A program made the position numbers and the translations under genes. Below the pieces are notes generated by a model. It saw only the letters and a list, made by a program, of their open reading frames with translations, was not told where the DNA came from and did not search any database. Positions 9,301-10,525 of a stretch of 16,140 nucleotides of DNA are shown here, one piece after another (within the stretch, counting starts at the first letter, position 1; every line of letters starts with the position of its first letter). This DNA comes from Salpingoeca rosetta (lineage: Eukaryota > Protista > Choanoflagellata). Location of the stretch: the NCBI GenBank assembly GCA_033442325.1, contig JAWQFM010000023.1, positions 213,809 through 229,948 on the forward strand, given 5' to 3'.

Positions 9301-10525
9301 AGACGCGCGCTTGCAGCTGAAGGGCGCGCGGATGTCACGTGCACGTACGCATGTGTCGCGTGGCACGCGTTGAGTGCTGTGTGAGCGCGTGGGGGTGCAG
9401 GAGGAGTTCACCTGTCGCTGGTGGCTGCCGCAACACGCTCTCCAAACGCAAACACACACACACACACACACACACACACACACACACACACACACACACA
9501 CACACACACACACACACACACACGCACGCACGCACGCACGCACCTGTTGTCGCTTGCGTTCGTTGAGGGCCATGAGTTCGCCACCCTGTTCACAGGACGG
9601 TGAAGATGAGTGACAAAGCGCAGCTGGAGATACACAAGTGCACGCGATGATGACGAACATGCTAATGCAGGAAGGACAGACAAGGCACACACGACATCAA
9701 GCGTTGGTGCCACACCTCTCGAAGAAGGCGATCTTTCTCTTGGATTTCGCGTTCCATGTTTGCCACGTGCTCACGCAGCGCATCGGCCTGCATGACCACG
9801 CACGGCGCCCGCGATTGCATGCAGAGGCATTCGTGAGGGAAGTGGAGTAGAGCAGCTCACAACGCACCAAAGACCAATTCGGTATCCTAGCATTCATGTG
9901 CAAGGTCACGTGTGCCCAAGGGCGAGCGAGCACAGCTCTGCTGAACACATCGCCTCACCCAATCACGCACAAGCACACATGCACGTGTGCAGGTGTACGT
10001 GCGTAACACACACACACACGCACACGCACGCACACGCACACACACACGCAGACACACCTGCTGGCGTGACACGCCTGAGCCGCCATCGCGTCCTCGAGCA
10101 CTGTTGCCGCCGAGGAAGCGGTCTTGCAGCTCCTGCAGCCGCATCTTCAAGTCAAAGTTCTCCTTGCTCAAGGCATCGATCGTCTAGGGGTGGAGAAAAC
10201 ACCAATGATTGGTGGTTAACACACAATGCGGCACAAAGAGGCACGCACCATACAGCGTGACACGGAACAGCATACAAGACGACACAAGAGACACAAGAGA
10301 CACACCACTACACAGAACACACACTCTACAAACACAACACGACACACGGAACACACTCAACACAACACGACACGGCACATCCACACACACGTGCACAAAC
10401 GCACACAAGCCACAGCTCCATGTCCGTTGCTGACATTGACTGACCTCTTCTTGGCTCTTGAGCGTGCGTGTTGAAGGCGAAGGCGAGCGACCATAGCCAC
10501 GAGGCCGTGGCGTGCGGTAGCTCAT
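316..10525 (-). CDS. Multi-exon centrosomin/CDK5RAP2/Mto1-like long coiled-coil protein with N-terminal CM1 motif (probably 3'-incomplete)
   Basis: Manual GT-AG model with phase-consistent exons (5'->3' on minus): 10525-10445, 10183-10058, 9787-9716, 9585-9544, 9316-9236, 8909(or 8933)-8758, 8498-8438, 8222-8043, 7815-7756, 7358-7305, 7105-7037, 6800-6751, 6537-6425, 6216-6035, 5784-5723, 5544-5500, 5263-5138, 4919-4835, 4658-4482, 4294-4213, 4012-3228, 2936-2837, 2613-2473, 2306-2236, 2052-1942, 1745-1599, 1414-1292, 1066-1009, 839-721, 478-~316. Total is about 3.7 kb (~1240 aa) with no internal stop. Start context is gccATGA. Most exons encode E/Q/R/L/A-rich heptad sequence, e.g. LRERVQELESRLDAANAQLQ and RIAQLEKQIDDLKEGL. 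A few boundaries and the end of the last exon are uncertain. Confidence 0.85.
498..572. repeat. (TG)n microsatellite, intronic
   Basis: Read directly. Similar (TG)n tracts lie at about 2086-2128, 4953-5009, 6962-7029 and 7688-7747. Confidence 0.95.
1198..1275. repeat. (CA)n microsatellite, intronic
   Basis: Read directly. Similar (CA)n tracts lie at about 1505-1558, 4335-4481 (imperfect), 9452-9523 and 10005-10057 (imperfect). Confidence 0.95.
3228..4012 (-). CDS. Largest exon (785 nt) of the CM1 gene; continuous coiled coil
   Basis: The acceptor is cacatcag|cg (phase 1) and the donor is cag|gtgcgt. The exon encodes AQAEDAEEEVGKLRRRLAAEEERRAEAED...RRMAEDCQQYQ, which is the genuine part of ORF 3180..4184(-). 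Confidence 0.9.
7377..7541. repeat. Perfect (GAT)n microsatellite, about 55 units, intronic
   Basis: Read directly. It lies in intron 7755-7359, just upstream of the acceptor of exon 7358-7305. Confidence 0.95.
8963..9081. repeat. (GTGTT)n pentanucleotide repeat, about 20 units, intronic
   Basis: Read directly (ttgtgttgtg...), degenerate at the right end. Confidence 0.93.
9544..10470 (-). other. Centrosomin N-terminal motif 1 (CM1 / Cnn_1N, gamma-TuRC-binding) spread over exons 1-4
   Basis: The spliced peptide is SPSPSTRTLKSQEE|TIDALSKENFDLKMRLQELQDRFL...QQ|ADALREHVANMEREIQEKDRLLRE|GGELMAL. It matches the CM1 core as I recall it (LxxxExxIxxLxKENFxLKLRIxFLEERL), followed by the second helix (..LxRELxEKxxLL..). 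Confidence 0.8.

Follow-up and report, generated by a model that had tools for sequence, protein, structure and literature searches.

The stretch of Salpingoeca rosetta DNA analyzed here (16,140 nt, hereafter the window; coordinates are positions within it unless a contig is named) carries on its minus strand a gene with a CM1 motif, which is transcribed and spliced. The original prediction had described this gene as an intron-split CM1 gene and interpreted its product as a microtubule-organizing center (MTOC) scaffold of the centrosomin (Cnn)/CDK5RAP2/Mto1 type. Our analysis confirmed the intron-split CM1 gene and supports the interpretation overall. We consider it very probable that the gene encodes the single Cnn/CDK5RAP2/Mto1-type CM1 protein of S. 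rosetta, ~1,300–1,550 aa in length. The predicted layout of this protein comprises a short [ST]P-rich tail, a CM1 helix encoded by exons 1–3 with its core in exon 2, and an alpha-helical coiled coil of more than 1,100 aa.

RNA evidence was taken from two raw stranded RNA-seq runs (X21 and X22) and two contig sets (X4 and X6), which come from three studies of the same organism; read-level mapping spans positions 9080–10780. Beyond exon 5, RNA fixes a single boundary, the start of exon 6 (8933), and the others are model-inferred. The features of the gene are as follows, with P0001, P0002, and P0004 denoting homologous sequences described below.

10526–10709, minus strand: 5' untranslated region (UTR); the X6 transcript contig reaches 10709, with some read depth extending to ~10780 (10733–10780 bin).
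10445–10525, minus strand: exon 1, 27 aa; [ST]P-rich tail, ending in the N-terminal flank of CM1 (human positions ~59–65).
10184–10444, minus strand: intron 1, 261 nt, GT..AG, phase 0; RNA joint in 18 reads and 2 contigs.
10058–10183, minus strand: exon 2, 42 aa; CM1 core (10183–10106), then a Gly/Ser/Arg-rich linker.
9716–9787, minus strand: exon 3, 24 aa; putative distal CM1 half (K-D/E-x-L-L block); junction in an RNA contig.
9544–9585, minus strand: exon 4, 14 aa, phase 0; joint 9584/9715 in reads and contigs.
9236–9316, minus strand: exon 5, 27 aa, heptad-like; contig pieces at 9236–9319, with a loose end at 9236 leading to exon 6.
8758–8933, minus strand: exon 6; start fixed by RNA (the consensus of the loose ends at 9236, 30 nt long, maps to 8933), end inferred from a dynamic-programming model.
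305–8757, minus strand: ~23 further inferred exons, helical/coiled-coil, ~1,080 aa; splice- and frame-consistent model with colinear tblastn matches to P0002.
3228–4007, minus strand: largest exon, 260 aa, all alpha-helical by AlphaFold2; matches P0001, P0002, and P0004.

The open reading frame (ORF) starts with an ATG at 10525 on the minus strand, and exon 1 ends in ...KSQEE at 10445, followed by the donor gtcagt. Exon 2 opens at 10183, after the acceptor cctag, with TIDALSKENFDLKM... (TIDALSKENF...), and the Phe codon of KENF occupies 10156–10154 on the same strand. Exons 1–5 are all in phase 0 and are separated by GT..AG introns. The original prediction had placed junctions at 10445/10183, 10058/9787, and 9716/9585, and all three were recovered in transcripts. 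The joint of exons 1 and 2 (10183/10445; CT..AC on the plus strand, equivalent to GT..AG on the minus strand) was found in 18 stranded reads in total, 12 in X21 (6 starts) and 6 in X22 (4 starts), as well as in two contigs, one from X4 and one from X6. The first mate lay on the plus strand in every read, which fits a minus-strand RNA sequenced from a stranded library, and read depth was ~3 in intron 1 compared with ~1,200 in the exons. The joint of exons 3 and 4 (9584/9715) was seen in three reads and two contigs. The exon 2–3 junction (10058/9787) is present in a 4976-nt X6 contig, in which record positions 4586/4587 are contiguous, and is also backed by four reads whose loose ends match the end of exon 2; the skipping of the adjacent (GT)n run accounts for its absence from the table of joints. 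The X6 contig starts near 10709 and has 4,389 nt downstream of 9236, indicating an mRNA of ~5 kb. Position 9544, previously taken as the end of the feature, is the end of exon 4 and not of the gene.

Profile and homology searches were made exon by exon. Against the Pfam profile Cnn_1N (PF07989; 74 model positions, gathering score 28.5 bits), exon 2 alone scored 29.5 bits (E 8.5e-7, model positions 8–33) and thus passed the curated cut-off. The same exon was the top Cnn_1N match of the whole genome in a six-frame scan of 55.4 Mb (27.9 bits), and the next-best matches, at 25–26 bits, have ENV or ENE instead of ENF. CM1 starts at about residue 20, near the N-terminus of the protein, and its core (Pfam positions 8–33), including all experimentally critical residues, is whole in exon 2. 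Relative to human CDK5RAP2, intron 1 interrupts the sequence between the N65 and Q66 equivalents. The motif had been called hidden, with no single ORF showing it; intron 1 does remove the N-terminal flank, but this wording was overstated, as exon 2 alone exceeds the cut-off. We further built a local CM1 hidden Markov model (HMM) from Monosiga brevicollis, fish CDK5RAP2, wasp centrosomin, frog myomegalin, and one further protein. On the window, this HMM matched exon 2 at HMM positions 16–37 (19 bits) and exon 3 at positions 56–74 (10.7 bits, E 0.008), in colinear order following exon 2. A phmmer search of exon 2 against PDB chains returned nothing relevant, the 42-aa query being too short.

Other Cnn_1N matches in the genome were rejected as CM1 candidates. 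Those at C12:1668509–1668685 and C2:2714452–2714634 are kinesin-14-like necks (C-terminal-motor kinesins) with ENV rather than ENF, and one more sub-threshold match was dismissed because it lacks ENF. The kinesin-14-like neck coiled coils cover ~60 Cnn_1N positions at 21–26 bits, probably as a coiled-coil cross-match. Some kinesin-14s act at gamma-tubulin complexes.

The functional weight of individual CM1 residues is known from human and Xenopus gamma-TuNA, the human sequence corresponding to aa 53–98 of CDK5RAP2 (Rale et al., PMC9859039). In that study, I67, L70, and L77 were needed for dimerization and F75 for binding and activation of the ring complex of gamma-tubulin (gamma-TuRC), while F63 had the least effect among the tested residues. 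At I67, L70, F75, and L77, exon 2 has the identical residue in all four cases. N74 is identical too, R80 is kept, and the I81 and L84 positions are both Leu. The Phe of KENF is therefore intact, as had been claimed, since it is the F75 equivalent. The claimed loss of two aromatic residues is equally real, with Q/E in place of Y82/F83, which are non-core heptad positions. The corresponding residues are Y/E in the M. brevicollis protein and N/E in that of Hartaetosiga balthica, whereas the aromatic pair is kept in 8/8 animal sequences aligned; the environmental sequence P0028 reads Y/Y. The alignment thus indicates that the predicted dimer core and the critical Phe are conserved and that only the putatively exposed face after them is changed. 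The proposal of a divergent gamma-TuRC interface holds for the missing aromatic pair, but not for the a/d core, which is conserved at all positions from I67 on, nor for F75.

We used the largest exon (4007–3228, 260 aa), which contains no CM1, as a probe against 1.84 billion representative proteins and obtained 12 matches at E ≤ 0.001. These included two choanoflagellate proteins: P0002, a transcriptome ORF of H. balthica (EP00055_P009693; 1358 aa, 32% identity, E 1.2e-17), and P0004 of M. brevicollis (XP_001746381.1, also EDQ88768.1 and A9V193; 1625 aa, 27% identity, E 1.6e-6). P0004 scores 74.6 bits on Cnn_1N; at the N-terminus of P0002, Cnn_1N is the top Pfam match, at only 19 bits. Exons 1, 2, and 3 align in order with the N-termini of both proteins, exon 3 with the same K-D/E-x-L-L block of each, and the ATG at 10525 is supported by exon 1, which matches the start annotated for the H. 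balthica ORF. Further downstream, tblastn placed P0002 residues 656–842, 874–914, 1027–1077, and 1077–1115 in order on 3881–3330, 2978–2862, 1751–1599, and 1417–1301. These comparisons show the CM1 family, as judged from sequence, in three choanoflagellates, and P0002 and P0004 are apparent orthologues of the S. rosetta gene. The best relatives are not an unrelated coiled-coil family, since an exon free of CM1 finds colinear choanoflagellate proteins, one of which bears a high-scoring CM1; these matches also fit the choanoflagellate origin that had been suspected for the DNA. A further match, P0001, is an exon-like ORF from a Logan assembly (309 aa, 59% identity, E 4.0e-78) and points to a close relative of S. 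rosetta in public read data.

The two orthologues resemble the S. rosetta protein in different ways. In the M. brevicollis protein, CM1 lies near the native N-terminus, the 260-aa exon matches a central coiled-coil block at 27% identity, and no other domain was found; its CM1 is, however, far better conserved (Tyr kept, IYEMEE). The H. balthica protein shares the start (MS..R..TP.RP...SPS), the same order of blocks, and 32–54% identity in the colinear exons, whereas its CM1 is more divergent (QENF, LNEYEE). The M. brevicollis model XP_001746381.1 is a fusion of ribosomal protein L26 onto the CM1 gene (CH991553.1:936858–947894, positions 1501–3409 of it). The L26 frame stops at its own TAA near position 2340 of that stretch, and the model splices past this TAA, joining an exon 850 nt downstream. 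The first half of the M. brevicollis CM1 is encoded in one exon, so intron 1 of S. rosetta is not shared. When the H. balthica orthologue served as query in a homologue search, it retrieved no protein but itself, the candidate list being swamped by coiled coils. The precomputed PF24161 (CCDC39) assignment on P0002 and P0004 was rejected as a coiled-coil cross-match; the real CCDC39 gene lies on C21.

For the remainder of the gene, the splice- and frame-consistent dynamic-programming model predicts ~25 more exons down to position 305 and an in-window protein of ~1,270 aa. AlphaFold2 modeled the 260-aa exon as two helices, residues 2–129 and 131–259, with a mean pLDDT of 92.8, and Pfam searches of ten of the larger exons gave only sub-threshold coiled-coil cross-matches. 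Together with the 4976-nt contig, these models are in agreement with the earlier claim that more than 1,100 aa of coiled coil follow CM1. About 940 nt of transcript lie beyond position 305, and the ~1.4 kb adjoining the window on its left (C23:212402–213808) reads N, which makes the last 100–150 aa and the 3' UTR unreadable. Leftward past this 1.4-kb stretch of N, nothing coiled-coil-like was found. Extending the gene leftward, as had been suggested, therefore carried the model to 305, but yielded no CM2, PACT, or MASC domain, the last 100–150 aa being in N.

Several local features of the gene were also recorded. The 5' UTR contains a 19-codon upstream ORF (10604–10545, minus strand), which is in a different frame from the main ORF and stops 20 nt ahead of the ATG. 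Simple repeats occupy 7376–7542, 8963–9066, 9440–9543, and 9995–10057 in introns; they include a triplet run of ~165 nt and, in intron 5, a 15-nt unit repeated approximately nine times. Many (GT)n/(GCGT)n tracts sit immediately after donor sites. At window positions 22–288, beside the stretch of N, lies a Leu/Gln-type low-complexity repeat.

How such a protein would act can be proposed by homology from work on the family (PMC9859039, PMC13187424, and PMC6281477), and on this basis we infer dimerization, binding and activation of gamma-tubulin complexes, and localization for the S. rosetta protein. The CM1 helices would pair as a parallel coiled-coil dimer through their a/d residues, the equivalents of I67, L70, N74, L77, I81, and L84. 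The dimer would present the conserved Phe, equivalent to F75, to the GCP2/GCP3 ring of gamma-tubulin complexes, and this docking would tether and stimulate the complexes wherever the C-terminal part of the protein anchors. The most plausible anchor site would be the MTOC around the flagellar basal body; we regard this location as plausible because the gene is apparently the only CM1 gene in the genome. The [ST]P-rich tail (TP.RP, SPSP; common to H. balthica) could, more speculatively, be a candidate element for phospho-regulation, in the manner of the Cnn and Spc110 N-terminal regions.

It is possible, if rather doubtful, that the protein is instead a CM1 tether working away from the basal body, at the nuclear envelope, the Golgi, or cytoplasmic sites, and not a scaffold resembling the pericentriolar material (PCM). 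Fission-yeast Mto1 and vertebrate myomegalin work at such sites. Consistent with this possibility, neither the window nor the orthologues' C-termini yielded a centrosome-targeting domain (CM2 or PACT), CM1 alone creates MTOCs wherever it is targeted (PMC6678760), and members of the family serve many different MTOCs (PMC6281477). However, an apparently sole CM1 gene probably serves the main MTOC too, and with the C-terminus unread, a missing targeting domain says little.

A number of results weigh against the assignment of the gene to the Cnn/CDK5RAP2/Mto1 type. The Pfam score of exon 2 is only 1 bit over the cut-off, and the six-frame score of 27.9 bits is just under it. Exon 1 gave no significant signal with the local CM1 HMM. 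The match of exon 3 to that HMM is weak and is about equaled by that of an unrelated exon near 4900; only its position lends exon 3 any weight. At the residue level, F63 is replaced by Q and Y82/F83 by Q/E. Finally, no CM2, MASC, PACT, or CC_CDK5RAP2 domain was detected with the C-terminal 100–150 aa unread, this end of the protein falling in the ~1.4 kb that reads N. The marginal score and the lost aromatic pair, together with the sub-threshold Cnn_1N matches to unrelated coiled coils such as the kinesin-14 necks (21–26 bits), are what would be expected if the KENF heptad stretch were CM1-like by chance, in a generic coiled coil with no gamma-tubulin function. We consider this very unlikely, as the motif occupies the very N-terminus, the place it has in the family, 4/4 functionally tested core residues are identical, and an orthologue found via a different exon bears a 74.6-bit CM1 at the equivalent place.

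Least credible of all is a pericentrin/Pcp1/Spc110-type CM1 protein with a PACT domain hidden in the unreadable last 100–150 aa: fungal pericentrin homologues do combine an N-terminal CM1 with a C-terminal PACT, but the only strong PACT (PF10495) match of the genome (76.9 bits, full-length domain) lies at C4:1318373–1318684, on a different contig from C23, and PACT was found neither in the window exons nor in the complete H. balthica orthologue or the M. brevicollis orthologue, the unread C-terminus leaving a small doubt. The encoding of PACT on C4 points to the window gene as the non-pericentrin, Cnn/CDK5RAP2/Mto1-type member. The C4 gene appears to be the choanoflagellate homologue of pericentrin/AKAP450, and the six-frame genome scan gave no Cnn_1N match near it. 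In animal pericentrins, CM1 is degenerate.

Markers of individual subfamilies and partner genes were searched for in the S. rosetta genome. CC_CDK5RAP2 (PF23246) gave no match at E ≤ 10, which is a weak negative, and the best genome matches to the Mto2-binding region (PF12808) reached 20.1 bits, below the 22.3-bit cut-off, with none on C23. Comparison of the C-termini of P0002 and P0004 with those of Cnn, CDK5RAP2, and myomegalin gave no significant similarity (best E 0.4). GCP genes were found on C6, C2, and C10 and MOZART1 on C32, and there was no match to MOZART2 (MZT2) in the genome. MZT2 has been reported only from deuterostomes (PMC6281477). Modeling of a CM1 dimer with GCP2 and MZT2, which had been proposed as a check, is therefore not the right test here.

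Compared with known systems, the window gene shares with Drosophila Cnn and human CDK5RAP2 (CEP215) an N-terminal CM1 with a KENF core, conserved equivalents of I67, L70, N74, F75, L77, I81, and L84, a long coiled coil following it, and a short, regulatory-looking [ST]P-rich tail ahead of it. It differs from them in the Q at F63 and the Q/E at Y82/F83, in the lack of a PF23246 match in the genome and of CM2-like similarity in the C-termini of the choanoflagellate orthologues, in that MZT2 was not found, and in a longer, Gly/Ser-rich linker between the CM1 halves of S. rosetta. With Schizosaccharomyces pombe Mto1 and budding-yeast Spc72, it has in common the combination of CM1 and coiled coil in an organism without MZT2. 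Like Mto1, which is paired with Pcp1, it would be the non-PACT member of a two-gene set, here with the C4 PACT gene; unlike for Mto1, no Mto2-binding region over the cut-off was found in the S. rosetta genome. Pericentrin, Pcp1, and Spc110 are likewise long coiled-coil MTOC proteins, the fungal members having CM1, but they are defined by a C-terminal PACT, which in S. rosetta sits in another gene that has no Cnn_1N match.

CM1 proteins connect microtubule nucleation to particular cell sites. They are known in animals, fungi, and Dictyostelium (PMC5946109), and a choanoflagellate member was thus expected from phylogeny. Ito et al. 2019 nevertheless list Cdk5rap2 as "n.d." for Monosiga brevicollis (PMC6559791, supplementary table), and our literature search found no paper linking choanoflagellates to centrosomin or CDK5RAP2, or CM1 to Holozoa. 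Two circumstances probably explain why the family was missed in choanoflagellates: the fusion of the M. brevicollis model to L26, and motif scores that lie close to or under the threshold in S. rosetta and H. balthica.

The RNA-verified 5' structure is now available for a gene that is open to tagging and knockout in a tractable relative of animals, and this gene could serve to test how the basal-body MTOC relates to animal PCM. One scenario, which we put forward as unlikely on balance, is that the fast evolution on the exposed face of choanoflagellate CM1 reflects an ancestral holozoan tether that bound GCP2/GCP3 more simply and independently of MZT2, and that the aromatic face, invariant in the aligned animal sequences, would be a later animal addition tied to PCM-type activation. 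If this were true, the present single-copy gene, in a choanoflagellate amenable to genetics, would represent the PCM scaffold as it was before animals, at the MTOC ring of the basal body.

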